This document shows, in pieces, positions 108 to 52,006 of a DNA stretch of 64,000 nt. A program made the translations under genes and the position numbers. Each line of letters begins with the position of its first letter. The first letter of the stretch is position 1. Source of the DNA: Trichosphaerium sp. ATCC 40318 (lineage: Eukaryota > Protista > Tubulinea); NCBI GenBank assembly GCA_038496445.1, contig JALMLS010000328.1, positions 64,071-128,070 of the forward strand, in the 5' to 3' direction. Under the pieces are notes generated by a model. That model did not search any database. It was not told where the DNA came from and was given only the letters and a program-made list of their open reading frames with translations.

Positions 108-749
108 GTGGTACCCAAATAATTCCACATGCTGCCAAGTCACTAGGCATTCAAATATCAAAAGACTATTTTGTTTAATGACCACATAACCAAGATAAAG
201 CAATAAATAACTTTGAACAAAAGAATAATCTGTAGTACTAGAAAGCATACGTCGGTCTATTTTGTTGGCATTTACTCATATAACACCACAATGTTGAAAT
301 CTGGAATCTGAAATCTTACAAATTGAAATCTATCATTTTTGAGCTATGAGTGAATTGCAGGTACAAAGTTGTGATCTGCATGTAACACAAAACATTTTGT
401 AATCTTAATTTTCATTTGTGTGCCTTTTGTGAGTGTGACCACGTGCAAACAATCTCGCTTCAAGCTATTGCTTTGAAAATAATAGACAGTATTTACCTAG
501 TAGAATCGAATCATGAACAGGTTTTTTCAGTTCTAACTTTACAAATGTCTAACAATCAACGGTAATTCAACCACTGCACCTAACCAAGATTGGATCATCA
601 CTGAGGTTTTGCAAGGATTTGACGCCTTTGGTTCACAACAAGCTCAAAGTAGGATCAATATTGAAACGAATCACTTAGCGACTGGAAACACAACAACTGC
701 ACTACACTTTTAGCTCAGTGGTTCCATGAATGTCGCAACAAGTCAAAAC

Positions 750-755
750 AAAAAA
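750..755 (-). terminator. Candidate Pol III terminator (T6) downstream of the permuted tRNA-Lys
   Basis: First run of >=5 T on the minus strand after the tRNA 5' half, ~92 nt downstream. Confidence 0.4.
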
Positions 756-847
756 GTGGTGATCGCGTCACGTGCTTTAAAGATTTGTGTGGGGTGAAGA
801 GGATTCGTTTTGAATCCGTAATCACCTCCAAATAATCGAAGTATATA

Positions 848-924
848 CGGTTAAAAGCCGGGCGCTCTACCAACTGAGCTACAGCGGAATAACTCCGCTG
901 ATTGGAATCGAACCAATGACCACC
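848..924 (-). tRNA. Circularly permuted tRNA-Lys(UUU): 3' half (924-893, nt 42-73), TTAT linker (892-889), 5' half (888-848, nt 1-41)
   Basis: Reordered halves give TCCGCTG TA GCTC AGTTGGTA GAGC G CCCGG CT TTT AA CCG|GG TGGTC ATTGG TTCGATT CCAAT CAGCGGA G: 73 nt, all four stems Watson-Crick paired, G73 discriminator, intact A and B boxes in reversed order. Confidence 0.85.
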
Positions 925-1648
925 TGAAACGAAGAAAAACACAAAGACTTATGTGCACCACACTTATAAGATATCAACTTGAGCTATTTAAGCTTGCAGT
1001 TGTTTCAAAAAAAAAAATTGTGGGCTACACAATCGTCACAACAACCGACTTAGCACATATCTCGAGCCATTTTTTGGTGTTTGTAAAAAAAGTGTGAATT
1101 CTAAAAAAAGCGTCAACACAAAAACAGTATGTTTTGATGATAAAGATATAATTAACTTTGGTTTGTAGCTGTTAGCCTTCAAAAAATAGCCAAAATATAA
1201 AATTTATTTGGTACTCTTTCAGTGTGCCAACTAATTTTGACAAAGATAATTTTGCCAACACAATTTGTTACAAGAATTTTTTCATAGCAGGTCTTGTAAC
1301 TCAGCCAGGTAACTATAAGGGTGTGCAATAAACTAATTTCAGCTCTCTATCATCCTTGGCTCCTACAAACAACAACACTTGCTTGAGGGAGAACTTATCT
1401 CTGGCTTGACCGTTACACCCTTGTTTTAATAAAAGTCACAGACACAATAAAACTACATCCGAAAAACCAAAAACTTTTCTGAGACATTGTAGCCATTGCA
1501 CAATTGCCTCTAGCCGTTTGTTACGCCTATAGGTTTCTAAGATAACCTCTTTTAGTCTCAAACGTCCGTAAAACCCGGTTTGTACGGCCAACATAAAAGG
1601 CACGTGCCACTACGGAATATATTCTTTATTTAATTTAGTAATATGACA

Positions 1649-4230
1649 TCATTGTAAGTCTAGCGTACAAGTTTGATCTTGAATAGAAGTAATCCCAAAG
1701 TAAAAGTTAACAATATCTGCCTTACAGTAATCAAGTCTATAATTATCTGCGAGTACAACAAGTGACCTAAAAAACAAAGAATTTAGTATTTATAAGAAAT
1801 TGTATCATGACCTTACCCTAAGAAAGGTTTACTTTGTTCATGGAAGTTTGTAAACAAGAAATTGAATACCTTTAAAAAGAATTAACTGCTGATCAACAAA
1901 AAAGAGACAAGTTTGCAGTAAAAAACTAAGCAATCAGCTGCAGATTACCGCTTTGTAAGTATGTTCCAGAAAACAGCTTAAAGTAAAGTAGAAAAATCAA
2001 TTGCTACTTGTGGGGCAGTTGTTTGTGAATTGCACGAGAAGGAGAAATTTTTTTTTGTTACTGACAAAATTCGAACCTCAACAAATAAGTGACCCTTATC
2101 CATTTGTATGAATACTTGACAAATATCAAACAACATGCATATAACAATAGATGTTCTTAGATGTAGGAAATACGATTCTTTGATGTTATAGAATACAACT
2201 TGAGCAAGCTATAAAGACATTAGCCCATCAACAAAAAAAGAAGAAAAAAGTTATCCTCACACCTTTACAGCCTTGTTATACTGTCTTGAAGCAAATAAAA
2301 CCAAAGTATCACAAAATTCAGCTGTTGTAATCCAAATTGAATACAGTTTGTCATTATACTGATGTAGTGCTGTATCACATAACAACTTGACTTTGTCTAT
2401 TCCTACCTTAAACTCTTCATATTGATCTTCTGTCTAGTAGTTGTTAATCAATCTCAGTTTGCTTAGTATCTTAGTAACATGCAATGTAATTGAACATATC
2501 ACGTTGAATACAATTGTTTGTTGAAAGCATTTGCGGTGAAACAACAGAGATGGTGAGCCAAATCTAGGAGTAAAGATAAGAGGGTTTTTTTTGAAGATTT
2601 GGTAGTCAACGCTTTTATTCCTTTCTCAATTGATTACCTTTGATAGTATGCACCATATTGTAATAACAGTAAGATCGTAAGGTATAGATGTAACATTATA
2701 ATTAAGGAAAGATAACGTTGAGTTAAGTTGTGCTATAGCTTTAACTTCAGCAGCTCTAGAAAAAAAAAACTTAATCTGGTGAGTAAAAAATATGTTGTTT
2801 ACCTATCTACAAAGAAATTTATAGTAAAGGATCTTATACGTATGTCTATTAATGATAGATGTCCGAGAGGCTTTAGTGATGTATCATTTTTATGCTGAGG
2901 GTCTTTTCTGAGACTATCAATCAATTCTGTTTAACAACACATGTCAGCCTTTAAAAACAATTGTCCTTTACGTTTGTCTACTTTTTTATGTCATACCTGA
3001 TCCCATATCGAATTTCAATGCTTCAATATAATTTCCCGTCATCAACAGGTAATCTCTTGTTAAAGCATACGCAGCTAAGGAGATATAAATAATGAGTGGA
3101 AGAAGAACAAAACAAAAACTAAGGAAAAAACCAACGTAGCTCTGTACGTACATACATAGCAAGGATGCAATGTAGTATTTCTATCTTTAAGTAATGCTTG
3201 TATTTGTATTCCTTTCTTATACAAGTAATATGACCTAGTATGACAACCAGCCAAAAACGCAGCTACGGTAAGTATACCAAGAATCTCAGCAGCCTCAGGT
3301 GTAATCCAATCATCTATCCTGGGGTTAACAACCAAACAGCTTGCGTGCAGCTTTTTCACGTGCCTGGTTCAAGCACTGAGAATAAGTTGATAATACTTTC
3401 AGTGTTCCATTCATTAACAGGTACGTTCTGAAACAGAAGAAAAAAAGTTAGAAAGAAAGCAACAGATTGCAAACGGCTTTTATCATGTGTACGAAAAGGT
3501 TTTTTGCACTTTTTTCTACTGTTTATAATTTTCCGATACTAAAACGGAAGTGGACTGATCAGGCTCTGTCCTGCAGCTGCAGCTGACTTTTAAAAAAAAA
3601 TTTGTTTTTTTTGGTTTTTCGTTTTTGGCATTCATGCACCCACGTGACGTGCGTATTCGCTAGAAAAGAACAGCACGTGCGACAAGAAGTGATGAGGCGT
3701 ACAAAATGAAGAATGGCGTCTGAATACAGCTTTAGCCATCTTGAGATCTCTGAAGCGCTTCCCAAATATGCGTATATCGCCCACGAAGCATTTTGGGGCG
3801 TCTCAACGTAAGTTAGATAATTTGTCCGTTTTTTGTACTAGTGTTGTACCATACTGTCTAAAACTTGTCGAGGATCATGATGATCATTGTTTGGGTAATA
3901 AGAAGGGGTTTCAGCCTGTTTTTTAATTGCTTCGTATCCTTCTTTCAACCGTTCAATCTCCATACGTTTTTCTTCCAATTGACGCATGAGAGACGTTTTG
4001 TCTGTTACTTTTCGAAAAAAGTCGTTATTATCAACTAATTAGCTTAAATAGTTATACTAACGTGTAGTAGATGTGCTTTTTGGCTGTTCGTGTGGATAAA
4101 CGCACTGAATTTTGCGTTTTGAACATTGTTTGCATGGCATTGCGCCATTGCACTTTGAATGCTTCTCTTTGCAATAAGCACATGCTGTGTTAGCCTTAGT
4201 CTTTTTTCTTTTTACCCCACGGCTTTTCAT
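1649..4230 (-). CDS. Zn(II)2Cys6 (GAL4-type) transcription factor, multi-exon
   Basis: Exon 1 (below the ORF-track cutoff) reads MKSRGVKRKKTKANTACAYCKEKHSKCNGAMPCKQCSKRKIQCVY = CX2CX6CX5CX2CX6C; a coiled-coil exon follows (LMRQLEEKRMEIERLKEGYEAIKKQ); later exons end ...TCTLDLQ*. Internal exons approximate. Confidence 0.8.
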
Positions 4231-4589: not shown

Positions 4590-4770
4590 TACAAAGATGA
4601 ATGGTTGAAGATGTTGGCTAGAGTAGATACGGTCATTCACAATGCTATTGTATTACAGATAAGGCGTTAAGGCTTTGGCTGGTGTTCATACAGTTAACTT
4701 ATCAAGTTGCTGTGGTGTAACAGGCGAGGGTATCTTGGCGTTGACTCGCAATGGTGTCATAAGATTACAA
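4590..4770 (+). pseudogene. Decayed AGVHT-type LRR gene fragment
   Basis: Frameshifted repeats ...LKMLARVDTV / ITDK / GVKALAGVHTVNLSSCCGVTGEGILAL. Confidence 0.7.
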
Positions 4771-4832
4771 AGCAACAGAGGCATTAGTTGGTGTACTCTG
4801 GATAATGTTTGTACCCCTTTTATTACTTTGTT

Positions 4833-6544
4833 TTACAGCTGTGATAGCAACATAATTAGTATAATAACTAACTGGACACTACACATTCGGATAGATACCG
4901 AACTGCAAGGAAGTATATCTCCAATAAAGAATAGAGCACGTGTAGAAGACAGTTCTAGAAAACAATAAACAAACATACCCATAACAATTGTAGAATGATA
5001 CATACCTGATTTTAGCGATGAGCAACCAGAAGCGTGCTTGACCAATACATCTGAAACTGAAGATTCATCACACAATGAATAAGAGTTAAACAACTCAAAA
5101 CCATTAACAACAGAATCAAGTGAGACTGTGAGACTACTAAATGAAGTACATCCTTCAACAATTATCGTCGTCTTCTCATCAACTGTGATTACAGCACTAT
5201 CAAATGAGATGTTTCCTAACCCCGTACTATCAGTATAACATACGTTTGGTTAATATTTATATGCTTACCTTGTACTTTGATGGTGATACCACGCAAGTCT
5301 AACTCTCCAGCCAACTCAACATTTTGATTCAAGAACACACAAAACGAATTGTTTGAACATGTCGCACCAAGCGATTCAAGAGCGATTACTTTGTTAGTTG
5401 GCTCTACCAATACTGGCGCTTGCGATGGCACTTGTTCACTTGGTACTTGATCATTACATTTACCGTCTTCTCCTAAACAAATTGAGTCCTTAGAAAGAAA
5501 GTCATTGGAATGCTAGACGAGTTTACCTGCCATGAAGATACCTGATATCTCTTCACTTAGAAGAGGTCTGTTATAAATAGACACCTACACGTTTTTAGCC
5601 AATAAAATCAACATAAACTTGGTGTACTTCGTCAATTGCAAGGTGAAGATCATGTCCAATTTTAAATGGTGTCCCAGTATCGTTCATACAACATGCGTGC
5701 GTTGTAGTTACAGCAATATTCCCATTAAAGTAAAACCTCGCCTTGTTGTCTACTCTATTATCAATGAGAATAAAACTTTGTTTGTTGTAGCGTACGAATA
5801 ATACGTCATGGCCACGTGATGCCATTGTACGTCAAGAGATGGCGTTATATCAGTTTGAGATGTTGGTCCTTGTGTTGTAACAAAACGTGTTGATACACGT
5901 GTACTTGATGATAAGAGTGCTTGTATTCCAGTGCCGTTTATTTTAGTAAATAAGTTTGTATTTCTTGTCTTTTGTGATGAGCCTGACCCAAAACTCAAGA
6001 GTGAAATCAGCTACAAGTCATCAGCTAAGCTAAAAAGTTTGAAAGCACAACTCACCGAAAATATCGCCGTCGCCATGATTTGTAATTATTTCTAAACCTT
6101 CACTTTCAAATGTAACGGCTGCATCGCCTACCTTTCCCTTTAGTAGCCATTAGCTAATATATATACTAATCAGAACAAACAGAAACTAAGCTTTTGGTAC
6201 GGAGTTTTCGGAGCAAACGATTTTGTTATCAGGGTTTTTTTTTGCTATTTAGGTCCACGTGACTTGAAAAGGCTCAAAGGTTGCTTGTGGCAAGAGAATT
6301 AAGCAGTATGAGTTTTTCCGGTAAAATAGAAACGCACCTTTGTTCTGGTTGGCGTGGTTGATGTAAAATATGTAACGGGTGGGTCTGGATAGCTTGCTGA
6401 ACTCAATGCCAAATTGCCTCCATCCTCAAACTTATACAGCCCCATAATACCATCAGGAGTTTCGTAGCAAACACCACAGCAAGTATGAATATTTGCTAGA
6501 AATCCTAATACCAACAACCAGTAATATGAGCCAGTAAAAGACAT
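4833..6544 (-). CDS. Secreted/anchored LamG (concanavalin-like) domain protein, multi-exon, with an apparent frameshift near 5980
   Basis: Signal peptide; motifs GLYKFEDG, DFTLEFWV, WHHVAMTY, FYFNG, IDEVSIYNRPL; hydrophobic C-terminus. Confidence 0.7.
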
Positions 6545-7104: not shown

Positions 7105-7787
7105 ATGACAAACGAGGTGAGCGACGTAGTAATAAAAGTGCTGTTAATAATAAACGATAGATTAACACAAAGAAACCTGACCATTGCTTCCTCTTGTACC
7201 TCCCTGTTGAATTACAGCTTGATATCATAGATTTAGACTTTGAAACGTATCTTAAATGGCCTCTTCTAACAAAACAAATGGCATTAACCACAAGGTTTAA
7301 TGAAGAGCTAGAAAAACATGGCAAATGGAGGAAAGGCCAGTACAATTGTTCTGAAGAATCCAATTTCATCAAAGGTAAACAACATGGAGAATACAAATCA
7401 TGGTATTACAATGGTATTCTAAGTGAAAAGTGTAATTACAATAATGGTAAGATACATGGAGAGTATAAGAAGTGGTATATAGATGGTCAGTTGAAGATAA
7501 AGTGTGTCTACTTTAATGGCAAGTTAGAAGGAGAATACAAGATGTGGCATCAAAGTGGCCTCCTGCTATTTCATGAAAACTATCTAAATGATAAACATCA
7601 CGGAGAGTTTAGCCAGTGGTACAGTAGTGGTCAATTACGTAGACAGTGTAAATACATGAACGGAAAACTAGATGGAGAATTAAAGTTATGGTATAAAAAT
7701 GGTAATATGTTTAAGCAATGTAACTACAAAAATGGTAAACAAATAGGACAGTACAAAAGCTGGCACTACAACGGCCAATTGATGTGA
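7105..7787 (+). CDS. F-box-like + MORN-variant (YwqK-like) repeat protein; one intron 7117-7160
   Basis: MTNE|INTKKPDHCFLLYLPVELQLDII..., then repeats of the GEYKxWYxNGQL..CxYxNGK type. Confidence 0.8.
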
Positions 7788-19146: not shown

Positions 19147-19225
19147 AGCAATTATGCACAAGCGGTGTACGCTTGCAAAAATAAATGGGAAATGGTGTCC
19201 TTACAAAATAGAAATCAAAAAGCAG

Positions 19226-19297
19226 TGAGGGCGACGTGACTCGAACACGCAACCTTCTGATCTGGAGTCAGATGCACTACCATTATGCTACGCCCCC
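19226..19297 (-). tRNA. tRNA-Trp(CCA), intronless, normal order
   Basis: GGGGGCG TA GCAT AATGGTA GTGC A TCTGA CT CCA GA TCAGA AGGTT GCGTG TTCGAGT CACGT CGCCCTC A, followed by a T5 terminator. Confidence 0.95.
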
Positions 19298-19396
19298 TGC
19301 TGGATGATTGACAAAGCGAGAAAGGGATTCCCATTATGTAACAAGTAATGAATATTGCAACTAGTTGGTTTTTATATTTATCTGGCAAATTTACGT

Positions 19397-21505
19397 TTAC
19401 ATTAAAACCCAAAATATCATAAGTGCTACGAAAGCTACTAGGATTGTTTTACGTGTAGATGGCGCGGGAGATTCACGTAGCTCTTCCAAGAACATGTCTA
19501 CCATGCTAGGTATTCTATCTTGTACATTTGGAGGTAATCGAGGTGCAAAATTGAGGTAGTTATCTACGCGCGCATTGTACTGTGGTGGGAATGGTGGGTA
19601 CAAGTTGAGAATAGGTGCTAGTGTAGGCGTTTGTTCAAGAGACCTAGAAAAGTTATCAGGTTAAAGTTTGCAGCTCTTTTGAAATACTGAGGCTTGTGGT
19701 TTTAACGCGCACCTCTTGGCCCAATCCCATGGTAATTTACTACTACACCTTGTCAATTGAACACTTGTGAGGTTTGGTAAGTGTCCAAAAGCTAAGTAAC
19801 GTGAGTATAAGGTTTAAAGGAAAAAATAAAAAGTCCACCTTTGCGGAATTTATCTATGCATTGATCTCTCGCTTTTGCATGACCACGCTTCTTTGATATT
19901 GCATTTCCTTTTATAACATCTCGTATTTTATCAATAGTACGAACCCATATTGGTGTGAGACCAGTAATATTTGCGTGAGCAAAGGAAAATGCCAAATCCT
20001 AAAATATTCCAGAAAAAAAATGAGATAAATCACAAAGTGAAGGTTCGGCTATTTTTTGTGTAAAAGTAAACGAACCTCACAATTCATAGTATCGTCAACG
20101 TGAGATAAAACTTCACGAGGAGTAACTTCAAAGTACTTTTTATGGAACTTTTTATGATAAAACGCAGCCTTCGTCAGTACCAAGCGATATCCAATAGAAA
20201 GCGCATGGCTATTATAATTGTCAGTTAAAAATAAAAAAACGAAGAAGAAGGCAACTCTACAAAAAAGAAAGGGGCTCCCTCTTCTGATTTACGTACTGAT
20301 TGGGGTTACCACTATGGTAATCTAAGTTACCTTTTGCGTTCTTACAAGATGTGGCACGAGGAAAGAAACCGACCTAAACCGTCTTAACACCACAACAGCG
20401 AATCAACCAAAACGCCAAGCAAACATAAGCCAAAAACAACTAAAATCGAAAAGCATTAACGAAGTCGCACCATACGATCTTGATGTAGATCCCACGTCTT
20501 GAATGCAAACTCTAGGTCATCACACTTTATAGTAACATCATCATCAATATTGAGAACACCTGAAGTCTTTATTTCGTCTTGAACTTTAAACTGATTGCTG
20601 AGAAGGTTCTTATCGAATTGTACAACACGGACATCCTTGCCGTTAACCTGAAGCACACATTGGTTCAACACAAACCCCAAGCTGCAAATCGCTCTTCGTT
20701 TTGAAAAACTTAAAGGTACCTGTTTCATATCACTTAAGAAATCATATGGCTTGTTTTCTGTGTCGCTCCATACGATAATATAATCTTGGACATTTGGACA
20801 TTTCGTGTAGTGTTGAATTGACTTTTTAAGCAATTTAGGACGTCTGAATGTATTACAAACAATGCTGTGTGCGAGGTCAGTACAGACTGGTAAAAAAAAT
20901 GTAAAGATACATACGTGTAGCGACCATTAATAGAGGTGGAACGAGCTACTGTATGTTTATCGCATGGCAGGCTTTTTACTTTTATCTCATCATTATGCAA
21001 TTGTAGATCACTATGTGCTAAGCATGATAGATCGTGGTGTGCGTCACTGTGCGCGTAGTTATGTTGTTGCCTAACCTAAATACTTTTTCAAAAGCAGCAC
21101 GATACATTTGACAAGAGAGCGAGAGAAAGTTAACAATACAGGTATCTTTTAAAGAATCGTTCAAGATTACTTTACGAGTAAACGTGACTACCACATAAAA
21201 CAAAATCTCGTGCTAATCTTGTAAAATTTTATACAACAAAAGTGGCACGACGCTTGTACTTGAAACGCTCAAAAAAAATAAAAAAACGTGTTTAAAGTTT
21301 TTAATTATTCTTTTGGCTTTTGTTAACATACCTTGCCTTGCAGAGGCGCTATAGCGTTATTAACCAACGGGTTTGGCGCGCTGGTAGATGTTTTTGGTAC
21401 GAACGAGAGCCCAGCCAGAAGAGCAACAACGCCTGTGAGTAGTAGAGCTACTACAAACGCGTTGAAGCTACAAATGACCACATTTGTAACCTTTTCAAAC
21501 CGCAT
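19397..21505 (-). CDS. Glycosyltransferase family 64 (exostosin C-terminal/EXTL2-like), multi-exon
   Basis: N-terminal signal anchor; motifs IIVWS, LNIDDD, FAFKTW, VLTKAAFYHKK, NCE|DL, ARDQCI. Confidence 0.85.
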
Positions 21506-46824: not shown

Positions 46825-49433
46825 ATGATGAAGCTCTTCTTTGTTTCAAGTATTCTCATGCTCTTTATACACGTATGTGTAGATCACCAAGGTCTAGGAA
46901 TCATGCGTTAACATTGGTCTAGGTGCAGAATTCAGTATGCCAGCTTAATTATCCAGTTACTGGCATTCAAGTTAACAAAGACTCTCTAAGTGACTATGCT
47001 GATTGGACGCCTTGCGTGAATGTTGCTTGGGGAGCAGAAATAGATTCTGAATTAGCTCAATGCTCAACAGAGGAAGACATAATGACTCTCATGGGGTGTG
47101 TTGGCAGTGATAATAACTTTATCGTCTATGGTACGTGTAAAAGTAAAAGACTTGGAAAAAAAAAAGGAAACAAGCTGCTTGTCATTTTATTCAACCTTGT
47201 GATAACTGAAGCTTGTTTATAACGTCACACTCTCAAACTTACTCTTTTACAAGCAATTGGAAGTACAGAAGTCTTAACACAGGATCTAGCACCACTTCAG
47301 GAGTCAGAAACCCAAACTTTTATAAATGGTGCATATTGGTATCGTGGCGAAAATTCAATTGGGTTCACACCTATAAATACAATTAGACTTATTTCGTGTG
47401 ATGGCAACTTGGACGGACAGTTAAATATGAAATTATGTTTCCATATATTTTTAGGTGGTTGGAGGTACGTTCTTGTTTGTAGTTTGGTTTGAATGCACAT
47501 GCTAATTGTATCAAACAGGTGTGGTACAAGTACTACTATTAACGACTCACAAGGATTCAGAAAGATAATACTTCAAAAATTACCTCTCCCTCCAACAACC
47601 CTATCTCCAACACTACCGCCTACCACATTACCTCCTACAACACTTCCACCGACAACACTCCCACCGACAACTTTACCGCCAACTACACTACCGCCTACTA
47701 CTTTACCTCCTACAACATTACCTCCAACAACATTACCTCCTACAACACTTCCACCGACTACAATGCCTCCAACCACTCTACCACCTACAACATTACCTCC
47801 AACAACACTACCGCCAACTACTTTACCGCCAACAACTTTACCTCCAACAACACTCCCACCAACTTTACCGCCAACCAGTCTACCACCAACCACTTTACCG
47901 CCAACAACTTTACCGCCAACAACACTACCGCCAACTACATTACCTCCAACAACATTACCGCCAACAACACTCCCACCAACCACTTTACCACCTACAACAT
48001 TGCCACCAACAACATTACCTCCAACAACATTACCTCCAACAACATTACCACCAACAACTTTACCACCAACAACATTACCGCCTACAACACTTCCACCAAC
48101 AACATTACCACCAACAACACTACCGCCAACCAGTCTACCACCAACATTACCGCCAACAACTTTACCACCAACAACACTACCGCCAACCAGTCTACCGCCA
48201 ACAACATTGCCTCCAACCACGTTACCTCCAACAACGCTTCCACCAACAACATTACCACCAACAACACTACCGCCAACCAGTCTACCACCAACAACATTGC
48301 CTCCAACAACGTTACCTCCAACAACCTTACCACCAACAACGTTACCTCCAACAACACTACCGCCTACAACGCTCCCACCAACAACACTCCCACCGACAAC
48401 ATTACCACCCACATCGTTACCACCAACAACATTACCTCCCACTACACTATCGCCTACTACTTTGCCACCAACAACCTTACCACCAACCACTCTACCGCCA
48501 ACCAGTCTACCACCAACAACATTACCGCCAACAACTTTACCACCAACAACACTACCGCCAACCAGTCTACCACCAACAACATTGCCTCCAACAACATTAC
48601 CTCCTACAACACTTCCACCAACTACATTGCCGCCTACTACTTTGCCGCCTACAACACTTCCACCAACTACACTCCCACCTACAACGATGTCCCCTACAAC
48701 ACTCCCACCAACCACTCTACCACCTACAACATTACCTCCAACAACACTACCGCCAACTACTTTACCGCCAACAACTTTACCGCCAACAACACTCCCACCA
48801 ACCACTTTACCACCAACCACACTACCTCCTACAACATTACTTCCAACGACACTTCCGCCTACAACGCTGCCTCCAACAACACTTCCACCATCAACACTGC
48901 CACCAACAACACTGCCGCCAACAACGCTCCCACCATCTACACTACCGCCAACGACACTACCACCTACAACTCTCCCTCCAACAACACTTCCACCAATGAC
49001 TCTCCCTCCCACCACATTGCCTCCTACAACGCTTCCACCAACAACATTAGCTCCCACTACACTACCGCCTACTACTTTGCCACCTACAACGCTTCCACCT
49101 ACTACACTACCTCCTACAACATTGCCTCCAACCACACTACCGCCTACAACGCTGCCTCCAACAACACTTCCACCGTCAACAGTTCCGCCTACAACGCTCC
49201 CACCAACTACACTACCGCCAACGACTACAACTCTCCCACCAACAACACTTCCACCAACTACTTTACCACCAACAACCTCACATCCCACTACAATGCCACC
49301 ACCAATGGCATTACCTCCAACTACACAATCACCAACACCTACACCTCCACCAATAGGTGAAGGTCAAATACAGGCACCTGTTTGGCAATATAGAAAAAGA
49401 TGTGTTAGACGACTATCAAAAAATGAACTGTAA
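46825..49433 (+). CDS. Secreted protein: Cys/Trp-containing globular domain + long (TLPPT)n mucin stalk
   Basis: Signal peptide MMKLFFVSSILMLFIH|VQ; exons give NGAYWYRGENSIGFTP...GGWR|CG, then the repeat exon. Confidence 0.8.
47590..49270 (+). repeat. Coding 15-bp tandem repeat (TLPPT), ~110 units
   Basis: Read directly; variation is concentrated at third codon positions of the + frame. Confidence 0.95.
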
Positions 49434-49716
49434 AACCAAATTAAACACTGTACCTTCTGATCCAACCAGACTCCATGAAAATGAATCAATAACCTAGCAT
49501 GAGAAAAGCACATGCTAAAAATTGACTTGCGTCAACACGTGCCATAAGGAGTTTTGAAATACAAAAGCAGTTTTTTGTACCTATTACACTATTTTGGCAT
49601 TATTGTATTTACAAAACTGGTTCAATTCCTTCTAACGTATAATAGACAGTAGCAACATCTCAGAAATAAGTGCACGAGCTTAGGTTATCTGGAAGACTTA
49701 ATAGCTGACTAAGCCT

Positions 49717-50633
49717 TTGTCAAAAGATAACCTTAGCACAAGCAATCACTATGACAGATTCTTCACACGAACGTGCGCAACAAACTACTTTTTAGTTGTT
49801 TTAAAGCGTATTATACCTGCAACTGACTATAAATCGTTCGTAGAGGCTGTTCTACCTCCTGAAGTATTAATGGTTGTCTCTGAACACCTTGGCGTTGCTG
49901 ATTTTCTTTCGTTTTGCTCAATAAGCAAGTTTATAAGGTCTCTATGCCACCAAACGTTCGAAATAGGCAACGAGAGGCTATACAATTTCTTGGTTTACAA
50001 AAAGAAATACTATATAACTCTGAAACGACCTCAAACATGTATGTATAAGCTACCTGTGCGTAGTCCATGGAATAAAAGCGATTCAGACATGATAACTTAC
50101 TGGTACGATAAAAATAAAGCCAAAACACTTTTTGTGTTTTTTTATTGTTTCTTTTTTTAGACTTTTTTCTTTAAGTTGCAACGTACCTGCTTAAGCTAGT
50201 ATTTTGTTAAATAAACTGCTGTAGGTACAAAATAGAAGTCAATCCTTTGACTTTGTTTGTGAATAATGGAAATGGCACATTTTCCCGGACAACAGGACAC
50301 GTGTCACATCATGATAAAGCAGCTGTAAAACAGACACTGGTGCCATATGGCACGTGCTTTGGTTGTGAAGCTATGCAAAGAGATGACGGACGAGGTCTTA
50401 TTGATTTAAGAGATACTCCTTTCACAGTCGTGTCATCATTCACTCATGCTGGATGCTCCTCAAAAGGTTCTGCTGTAGTAAGTAATAACCAGCAAGTTAT
50501 ACGTTTAACTGGTGGCGGTTACTGTGGTTGGATTTCACCTGAAAAAGCCAAAAGCGAAGTTGAATCTTATTCTGGTGGTTGGTTCATTCAATTAGCCACT
50601 TTACCGCCAGAAAAGGGTTGCGGCATATCTTAG
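49717..50633 (+). CDS. F-box + GON-like domain protein; start uncertain
   Basis: LPPEVLMVVSEHL..LSFCSISK (F-box); TYW|YKIEVNPLTL...VPYGTCFGC...GRGLIDLRDTPFTV...QVIRLTGGGYCGWISP (GON-like). Confidence 0.72.
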
Positions 50634-50845
50634 ATGTTGTTTGAAATGCACAATAAATACTTCAAGCCCGTCATCGTGTCCGAGTTCTGCAAGTTAACTA
50701 TTCAACTTGGTTAACAACGACTTGTCTTTATTACTTCTTTAGTGCCACTAGTTCAACTTTGTTGCCAGGTTTATAGTAGCAATGACATTGACTGTTTATC
50801 AACTTGCTGCTATGGTACTTGTTGCAGTCTCCATAGTAAAGCACT

Positions 50846-51628
50846 ATGCAATGTTTCGTCCCAGCTCATGGCGTACTGCACCTTACAGACTTACCAATTG
50901 AAATAATAGCTCATATTCTCAAACAAGGCGCTTTTACACTCCATTCAGCACAAACTTGCCGCTTATTACGAGATATCGTCCACTACAATGTGGGATACGG
51001 GGTAATAAAGGTTAAAAGCAGTGACGAAATATCCGTTCTTTCTGGAAGCCCTTTACTCCGAAGTACCTCTATTTCTACTGCTTTGATATCAGCGTTTATC
51101 AGTGATAGTGATTTGTACTTACTGGAGGGTGTACGTTCTATTGATTTACAAGAAACAGATATTACAGACAATGGCTTGAAGATGTTGGCTGGAGTACATA
51201 CAATAAATTTGTCATGTTGCAGCTATGTAACAGATGAAGGTGTCAAGGCATTGGCTGGTGTACACACAATCGATTTATCGGTCTCTAGGGTAACAGATGA
51301 AGGCGTCCAAGCTTTGGCAGGTGTACACACAATTAACTTAGCAAATACTGTAGTAACAGATGAAAGCATGAAGGCTTTGGCTGGTGTTCATACAATCAAC
51401 TTGTCGTGTTGCTATAACATAACAGATTATGGAGTCAAGCATCTGGCTGGTGTACATACTATTGACTTAGAAAGTACATTGATTACAGATGAAGGTTTGA
51501 AGGAGTTAGTTGGTGTTCATACTATATCTTTAGCAAATACACAAGCAAGTAAAGTTGGTGTCAAGGTATTGATTGGTGTATGTAACGTTGTATGGGATAG
51601 TGATGTTGTTATAATCACAACTTTATGA
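50846..51628 (+). CDS. Intronless F-box-like + LRR protein
   Basis: LPIEIIAHIL; ~7 AGVHTI repeats; N-terminus nearly identical to the 41572-42729 protein. Confidence 0.9.
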   Translation: MQCFVPAHGVLHLTDLPIEIIAHILKQGAFTLHSAQTCRLLRDIVHYNVGYGVIKVKSSDEISVLSGSPLLRSTSISTALISAFISDSDLYLLEGVRSIDLQETDITDNGLKMLAGVHTINLSCCSYVTDEGVKALAGVHTIDLSVSRVTDEGVQALAGVHTINLANTVVTDESMKALAGVHTINLSCCYNITDYGVKHLAGVHTIDLESTLITDEGLKELVGVHTISLANTQASKVGVKVLIGVCNVVWDSDVVIITTL

Positions 51629-52006
51629 AATAGAGATGTCTTGTGTTTTCAGCTGCATTTCAACGCTCATCTCACCCTCTGTATCAAATGTTGCTGCTCA
51701 TAGTAAAAGATAGATTGCACTTAAGTGGTAAGGAGTATTTAGAGTATCATTTAGCGTAGTGAATGTTCATATCCGTCATTCTTTCAGATTAATATATCCA
51801 GAATTCTCCTTGACTAGTACCTGTAAAAACTTGTCCTATAGCCAGCTAAGTTACACTACTTTATTACTGAGTATGATTACCACTATTACGACTTATCTTG
51901 ATCACGCACTACAGATGACTTAAATACTTGTTTATTATTATCAAAACAAATCAATCTTATTTCTTCTTGCATCTCCCTAGTGTACACGTGTCTTTTTTTT
52001 ATTAAT

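Follow-up and report, generated by a model that had tools for sequence, protein, structure and literature searches.

The locus lies in a spacer of ~1.5 kb between two expressed, spliced host genes of the window (the 64-kb stretch of DNA that was analysed as a whole), and consists of the two halves of a tRNA-Lys(UUU) gene in permuted order on the minus strand, separated by four nucleotides:

893-924, minus strand: 3′ half of tRNA-Lys(UUU), tRNA positions 42-73, GGTGGTCATTGGTTCGATTCCAATCAGCGGAG (from the sequence read and ARAGORN)
889-892, minus strand: intervening sequence TTAT, by which the acceptor stem becomes a closed hairpin (from the sequence read)
848-888, minus strand: 5′ half of tRNA-Lys(UUU), tRNA positions 1-41, TCCGCTGTAGCTCAGTTGGTAGAGCGCCCGGCTTTTAACCG (from the sequence read and ARAGORN)

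Along the minus strand the order is 3′ half, TTAT and 5′ half, with the 3′ half upstream, exactly as the sequence-only reading had described it (a 32-nt 3′ half, TTAT and a 41-nt 5′ half). The 3′ half comprises the last two bases of the anticodon stem, the variable loop TGGTC, the T arm, in which the B box GGTTCGATTCC lies, the 3′ strand of the acceptor stem and the discriminator base G73. The 5′ half comprises the 5′ strand of the acceptor stem, the D arm with the A box, the 5′ strand of the anticodon stem, the anticodon loop CTTTTAA, and CCG. CCA is not encoded in the unit.

When the 5′ half is rejoined to the 3′ half between positions 41 and 42, ARAGORN recognizes a tRNA-Lys(ttt) of 73 nt in which 21 of 21 stem pairs are Watson-Crick (7 in the acceptor stem, 4 in the D stem, 5 in the anticodon stem and 5 in the T stem), so the earlier statement that the outer ends join without gap or overlap and that the stems are perfect holds. 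The universal bases are all in place in the rejoined tRNA (U8, A14, G15:C48, G18G19, U33, A37, G46, G53:C61 and T54T55C56), and the joint reads ..UUUUAACCG followed by GGUGGUC.., A37 being present in the permuted copy. The junction is fixed at 41/42 because the outer bases (..ttca on one side and tata.. on the other) forbid sliding. The coincidence of both end points is exact, for which the chance would be ~1/73 in the case of two independent truncations. Each half was found once in 64 kb where the number expected by chance is zero, and no further fragments of tRNA-Lys(UUU) were encountered in the window. The permuted feature is real and exact, and an origin by chance is very unlikely. The tRNA body is, as we take it, closely like yeast cytosolic tRNA-Lys(UUU), with U1-A72, G73 and an identical D arm and anticodon arm, and given this likeness it would be of the ordinary eukaryotic cytosolic type.

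In its genomic, permuted form the unit is missed both by ARAGORN, run on the window, and by the Rfam tRNA model at its gathering score, as had been anticipated for standard tRNA scanners. A structural scan for a T arm, an acceptor hairpin and a D arm revealed no credible second permuted tRNA in the window. The only canonical tRNA gene of the window is a tRNA-Trp(CCA) at 19225-19297 (minus strand), which appears to lie in sense orientation within an intron of ~200-230 nt of a minus-strand gene (flanks 19172-19400). Here, a GTAAAC 5′ splice site at 19400 closes the coding exon upstream of the tRNA, the cysteine-rich exon that follows the tRNA begins past ..tattttgtaAG or ..ttttgcaAG (at ~19201 or ~19172), and the tRNA’s own T5 terminator is located inside that intron.

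The surroundings of the permuted unit are those of an ordinary stretch of host genes. RNA-derived contigs from four public runs define spliced minus-strand genes at ~1683-3850 and ~4600-6000, the introns of the neighbouring genes being 41-75 nt in length and of the GT..AG type, and further RNA contigs place another expressed gene that extends into positions 1-211. The flanks of the unit are unique in the window, and the GC content is ~37%; the unit lies outside any mobile element or transposon, and no recombinase or reverse-transcriptase gene adjoins it. For a 75-aa ORF that runs across the locus (715-942) neither a database record nor a homologue was found, and an exact protein look-up of four intronless ORFs gave no record either. 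Several other features of the window can be recorded. A Zn2Cys6-type zinc-cluster motif (CAYCKEKHSKCNGAMPCKQCSKRKIQC) is encoded by the first exon, at 4057-4230 (minus strand), of the gene adjoining the permuted tRNA; the Zn2Cys6 DNA-binding domain is characteristic of fungi and seldom occurs outside them. Taken with the intron lengths of 41-75 nt and the GC content, this gene would suit a host among the early-diverging fungi as well as the amoebozoan suspected earlier. Between 4660 and 4800 the RNA contigs of several runs stop or jump, with many loose ends of the type ..ACAGATGAAGG.., which indicates a large leucine-rich-repeat gene family with repeats that cross-align, and the Pfam domain LRR_6 was present in five of the seven longest ORFs scanned. 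MORN-type repeats (YKSWYYNG.., GEYKKWY..) are encoded by an ORF at 7194-7787 (plus strand), and an ORF of 646 aa at 47493-49433 (plus strand) has a strong match to Extensin_1 (E 3e-40) and is situated in the only strongly negative GC-skew stretch of the window (-0.32 at 48001-52000).

Permuted tRNA genes have been described from Cyanidioschyzon merolae, prasinophyte green algae, the nucleomorph of Bigelowiella natans and Thermofilum pendens (Soma 2007; Maruyama 2010; Chan 2011; review PMC3978253). The literature searched, up to a 2026 review, mentions them only from Cyanidioschyzon, prasinophytes, the Bigelowiella nucleomorph and Thermofilum, with no report of permuted tRNAs in amoebae or fungi. 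The unit resembles these genes in having the 3′ half upstream on the same strand, a short linker (4 nt here), a canonical rejoined tRNA and no CCA, and perhaps also in a TATA-like sequence upstream and a T stretch downstream; C. merolae, too, possesses a permuted tRNA-Lys(UUU). It differs from them in its 41/42 junction, in the absence of a bulge-helix-bulge (BHB) motif, in a structured and partly conserved trailer of ~95 nt, and in its host, which is an intron-rich and apparently non-photosynthetic eukaryote. The published junctions are 15/16, 20/21, 37/38, 50/51 and 59/60, of which 50/51 falls inside a stem, and the published intervening sequences range from 1 to 74 nt (PMC3978253). Since 41/42 is absent from this set it would be a new junction, in keeping with its earlier placement outside the known classes.

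A BHB at the junction, to be recognized by the splicing endonuclease, is a feature of every published permuted tRNA gene (PMC3978253). The 41/42 junction was examined for this motif with the cuts fixed between the leader and G42 and between G41 and the trailer, and no BHB was found there: the central helix H has three of its four pairs (with one U.U), the exon helix h is mostly G.U, and the intron helix h′ has two of eight pairs, which are not contiguous, with relaxed geometries reaching only 3-bp helices. The partial BHB that had been noted before (UAAC/GUUU, 3 of 4 pairs and no outer helix) was thereby reproduced. An Rfam E-value scan of positions 600-1200 detected no ribozyme families in the flanks. 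To our knowledge, cuts placed precisely at 41/42 within a stem are not accounted for by any known nuclease. In sequence the flanks have the appearance of a 3′ splice site (ttcAG/G) and a 5′ splice site (CC/GTATAT) and are like the real introns of the neighbouring genes. Spliceosomal back-splicing was considered as a route to the tRNA and rejected because it would remove both G41 and G42, leaving a 71-nt RNA with a broken anticodon stem.

Candidate expression signals and a trailer can be recognized on either side of the unit, here listed in the order in which they are read:

974-986, minus strand: TAGCTCAAGTTGA, A-box/D-arm-like (13/14, with one gap), 50-62 nt upstream of G42 (P = 0.03)
963-967, minus strand: TATAA, a possible upstream Pol III promoter element, at -43 to -39 from G42
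935-939, minus strand: T5 stretch within the leader, at -15 to -11 from G42
756-847, minus strand: trailer, which holds an interrupted hairpin at 826-793 (GGTGA..GGATTC-AAAAC-GAATCC..TCACC)
745-755, minus strand: TTTTTTGTTTT, a likely Pol III terminator

In the window's canonical tRNA-Trp gene an ATAAT stands at -40 to -36, at about the same distance as the TATAA of the permuted unit. The T5 run would stop a Pol III that had started further upstream, and the leader would therefore be limited to ~10 nt. Runs of five or more T are absent from the unit itself; the first such run past the 5′ half is a T6 at 755-750, 93 nt downstream of G41, and with this likely terminator a primary transcript would measure ~185 nt. 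Folding predicts a pairing between the leader (932-925) and the part of the distal trailer that immediately precedes the U run; the terminal helices so predicted are short, rich in G.U pairs and variable with the construct folded. The precursor structure that keeps the tRNA core lies ~7 kcal/mol above the minimum-energy fold; an energy cost of this kind is not unusual for tRNAs. The trailer weakly resembles the 3′ half (P = 0.16), and the A-box-like stretch is either a relic of an upstream tandem copy or due to chance, so that the evidence for a decayed tandem duplication as the origin of the unit is marginal.

A second copy of the arrangement is represented among transcripts. In RNA-seq run X3 a single contig of 160 nt (depth 3.3) aligns to positions 811-921; the run is taken to be RNA because its other contigs, with a window match of at least 99%, skip introns. 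Compared with the window, this paralogue has nine substitutions, a single-base insertion in the D loop (behind 872) and a linker shortened by two bases (889-890), and the indels sit at places where tRNAs tolerate them. Its order of 3′ half, 2-nt linker, 5′ half and trailer is the same permutation. The paralogue is known through its alignment, in which the substitutions are individually listed for 841-891 only; the sole substitution within this zone is at position 846, in the trailer, and there is none in the 41-nt 5′ half. Were the nine substitutions evenly spread, such a distribution would be expected with P = 0.016 in the case of the 5′ half and with P = 0.034 in that of the listed zone.

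The first 37 nt of the trailer (847-811) align with the paralogous contig, and the loose end of the contig past 811 can be aligned by eye with the trailer of the window (ACGAA..TCTTC..CCACA..TCTT); the homology of the trailers extends over at least 65 nt, but is far more diverged than that of the tRNA part. At the other end the alignment breaks off at 921, three bases into the 3′ half, and the two copies have no leader in common. The paralogue RNA is a linear, unprocessed form of at least 160 nt that includes linker and trailer. These alignments suggest a low-copy transcribed family in which the tRNA part would be constrained (or gene-converted), and it is to a small family that the permuted unit probably belongs. 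Alternatively, the halves could be kept intact through gene conversion from linear tRNA-Lys genes; the argument from conservation is drawn from one contig. For the copy at 848-924 itself no RNA contig was found in the four RNA runs, which is weak evidence because poly(A)-type RNA-seq contigs rarely show tRNAs. Likewise, no back-joined (mature or circular) form occurs among the RNA-seq contigs of the four runs, a type of data that is ill-suited to tRNAs.

The interpretation that we favour, to which a probability of about 0.38 is assigned, is that of a functional permuted tRNA-Lys(UUU) gene which is evolutionarily maintained, belongs to a small family and is matured without a BHB, and which is neither a chance match nor a decaying fragment. 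For such a gene we infer the promoter, the transcript ends, each processing step and use in translation along the following lines. With the TATAA at -43 to -39 directing it, RNA polymerase III would start ~10 nt upstream of G42 and would read through the 3′ half, TTAT, the 5′ half and the structured trailer of ~95 nt before stopping at the T6. The two halves would then fold into a normal tRNA core, in which a GUUAU loop closes the acceptor stem and the RNA’s own 5′ and 3′ ends exit between G41 and G42, on the 3′ side of the anticodon stem. The acceptor loop would be opened by RNase P and tRNase Z and CCA would be added, as in algal permuted tRNAs, and a BHB-independent route would trim the 41/42 ends and ligate them to yield a tRNA that could serve in translation. 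Less probably, the ends at 41/42 would stay unjoined and be held together by pairing of leader and trailer, as in two-piece tmRNA.

Several observations count for a functional gene: the rejoined tRNA is canonical, its ends are exact, it is a single copy in the 64 kb, outside a transposon, and its 5′ half is free of substitutions in the paralogue; furthermore the 4-nt intervening sequence is within the published range, the TATA-like element is spaced as in tRNA-Trp, and a T6 follows downstream. Counting against it are the missing BHB, the want of a known nuclease for the cuts at 41/42, a long structured trailer unlike those of known permuted pre-tRNAs, the T5 run in the leader, a leader that is not shared by the paralogue and, weakly, the result that the four RNA runs gave neither a contig of this copy nor a back-joined form. 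The sequence-only reading had gone on to propose a new class with a new processing route, and this is possible. A wider reading, namely that a heterotrophic, intron-rich eukaryote (amoebozoan or fungus-like) would harbour a permuted tRNA family broken in the anticodon-stem/variable region, with BHB-free maturation by an unknown endonuclease-ligase pair or as two pieces through a leader-trailer stem, is rather doubtful.

A precedent for a route without BHB or ligation is offered by tmRNA, which works as two base-paired pieces without being religated. Two-piece tmRNAs, encoded by permuted genes, occur in alpha-proteobacteria, cyanobacteria and some mitochondria (Rfam cyano_tmRNA; PMC3985003). 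As in permuted tmRNA genes, the T arm and the 3′ strand of the acceptor stem precede the 5′ strand of the acceptor stem in the unit, and a weak Rfam hit of 17.7 bits was obtained. In contrast to tmRNA, which lacks an anticodon arm and possesses a reading frame for a tag, the permuted unit contains a whole tRNA. Split tRNA genes of Nanoarchaeum equitans and Caldivirga maquilingensis are similar in that two halves are united after transcription. In these organisms, however, the halves are separate genes that are joined in trans via long complementary leaders and a BHB, whereas the permuted unit would give one transcript, is permuted and has no BHB.

The competitor that comes nearest to a functional permuted gene, although we hold it to be somewhat improbable, is a non-functional rearranged tRNA copy that is tRNA-like only through its youth or through gene conversion. 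It could have arisen as the inner part of a tandem duplication that lost its outer halves, as a retroposed or recombinase-made copy of a circular or permuted intermediate, or as a low-copy tRNA-derived repeat. The A-box-like relic in the upstream flank (P = 0.03) would suit such a history, as would the order of the B box before the A box, which is the wrong one for an internal Pol III promoter, the missing BHB together with the lack of any known processing route, and the fact that expression of the 848-924 copy was not seen in the four RNA runs. The homology of the paralogue also runs from the first bases of the tRNA into the trailer, as would be expected of a unit copied from a transcript. 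The intactness of all 21 of 21 stem pairs and of all universal bases argues against a dead copy, and so does the avoidance of the 5′ half by the substitutions between the two copies (P = 0.016-0.034). No second copy of either half exists within 63 kb, and the unit is therefore not the middle of interrupted tandem genes; as to mobility, no recombinase or reverse-transcriptase gene is adjacent and the neighbours are spliced host genes. Moreover, at 77 bp a DNA circle is too small for recombination to use it plausibly as a substrate.

The flanks share CTTCG(T/A)TT, which is like a target duplication and has an estimated chance of ~0.1. Because the trailer is common to the paralogue it is not target DNA, and this removes the reading of the repeat as a target duplication.

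Related origins are contradicted as well. The unit as the middle of two tandem tRNA genes interrupted at 41/42 by large insertions is contradicted by the halves being nowhere else in the window and, further, by the adjoining DNA being a spliced Zn2Cys6 gene. A tRNA-derived SINE or retroposed pseudogene is at odds with the single copy in 64 kb, the non-uniform substitutions, the position of CTTCG(T/A)TT within the trailer common to the paralogue, and the missing A tail. A comparison may also be drawn with the circle junction of DIRS-1-type tyrosine-recombinase retrotransposons (Capello 1985, as cited in PMC5006619), in which the end of the unit likewise precedes its start, reflecting a circular intermediate. 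Unlike DIRS-1, the permuted unit has no adjoining element, repeat or recombinase gene, and it consists of a whole tRNA plus 4 nt. The literature searched contains no report of tyrosine-recombinase elements inside eukaryotic tRNA genes.

A further and rather unlikely competitor is a stable non-coding Pol III RNA of ~185 nt with a permuted tRNA-like domain that is never rejoined, which would be a eukaryotic counterpart of bacterial YrlA and might act as a partner of, or decoy for, a tRNA-binding protein (for example a Ro60-like protein, LysRS, a modification enzyme or an anticodon nuclease). YrlA (RF02553; bioRxiv 10.1101/312249) has a T arm, a loop-closed acceptor-like hairpin and a D arm, and its ends leave at the place of the anticodon stem. 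Among the Rfam families it matches the locus best (37.9 bits, E 9e-7, model positions 24-84), because the same order of T arm, closed acceptor hairpin and D arm is spanned by the match. The score is far under the gathering score of 69, however, and neither the Ro60-binding stem nor model positions 1-23 and 85-114 are matched. A mimic that is never rejoined could draw on the absence of a BHB, on the predicted pairing of the leader (932-925) with the distal trailer, which is found in many end-paired Pol III RNAs, on the occurrence in RNA-seq of an unprocessed paralogue RNA, 160 nt or longer, that retains linker and trailer, and on the conservation of the trailer, not the leader, in that paralogue. 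The predicted terminal helices are nevertheless short, G.U-rich and dependent on the construct. In contrast to YrlA, the unit keeps a full anticodon loop and exactly complementary halves of the anticodon stem; a mimic needs neither the exact 5-bp anticodon stem split across its ends nor the intact CUUUUAA loop, and no substitution in the paralogue touches the 5′ half with its anticodon arm. The context also differs, being eukaryotic, with Zn2Cys6 and LRR genes as the neighbours seen, none of them rsr/Ro60.

Metagenome scans bear on the same question, as they show that there are bacterial RNAs in which a T arm, an acceptor hairpin and a D arm follow one another in this order while an anticodon arm is missing. 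A generic pattern (T loop, 16-26 nt, D arm) was encountered in at least 120 stretches of metagenomes, and among the matches listed there were only tandem tRNA arrays and YrlA-like RNAs. In three metagenome contigs, L107 (minus strand, ~1710-1760), L071 (minus strand, ~539-590) and L007 (plus strand, 3415-3466), a T arm, a closed acceptor hairpin of 7 bp and a D arm can be recognized; these three lack an anticodon arm and received no ARAGORN tRNA call, and they are probably bacterial YrlA-like RNAs. The exact pattern of the permuted form had no match in viral and metagenome contigs, and that of the linear junction had none in viral and prokaryotic-genome contigs.

An assembly artefact, such as a mis-joined or collapsed tandem tRNA array, is very improbable even though no independent contig covers this exact copy, in view of an independent RNA-seq assembly that has the order 3′ half, linker, 5′ half and trailer in the paralogue, of flanks that are unique and ordinary intergenic sequence, and of the consideration that a collapse would not yield a junction-exact permutation with unrelated flanks.

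Permuted tRNA genes have so far been confined to a few algae, one nucleomorph and one archaeon, and the BHB ties their maturation to the tRNA-splicing endonuclease (PMC3978253). The present locus illustrates that complete tRNA bodies can escape standard tRNA annotation. If the unit is maintained in an unrelated, non-photosynthetic eukaryote, a break in the anticodon stem without a BHB would imply either an RNA cutting-and-joining route that is as yet unknown or the existence of eukaryotic tRNA mimics of the YrlA type. Should maturation free of a BHB prove to be true, it would constitute a second, independent way of expressing permuted tRNAs, outside the algae and the archaea.
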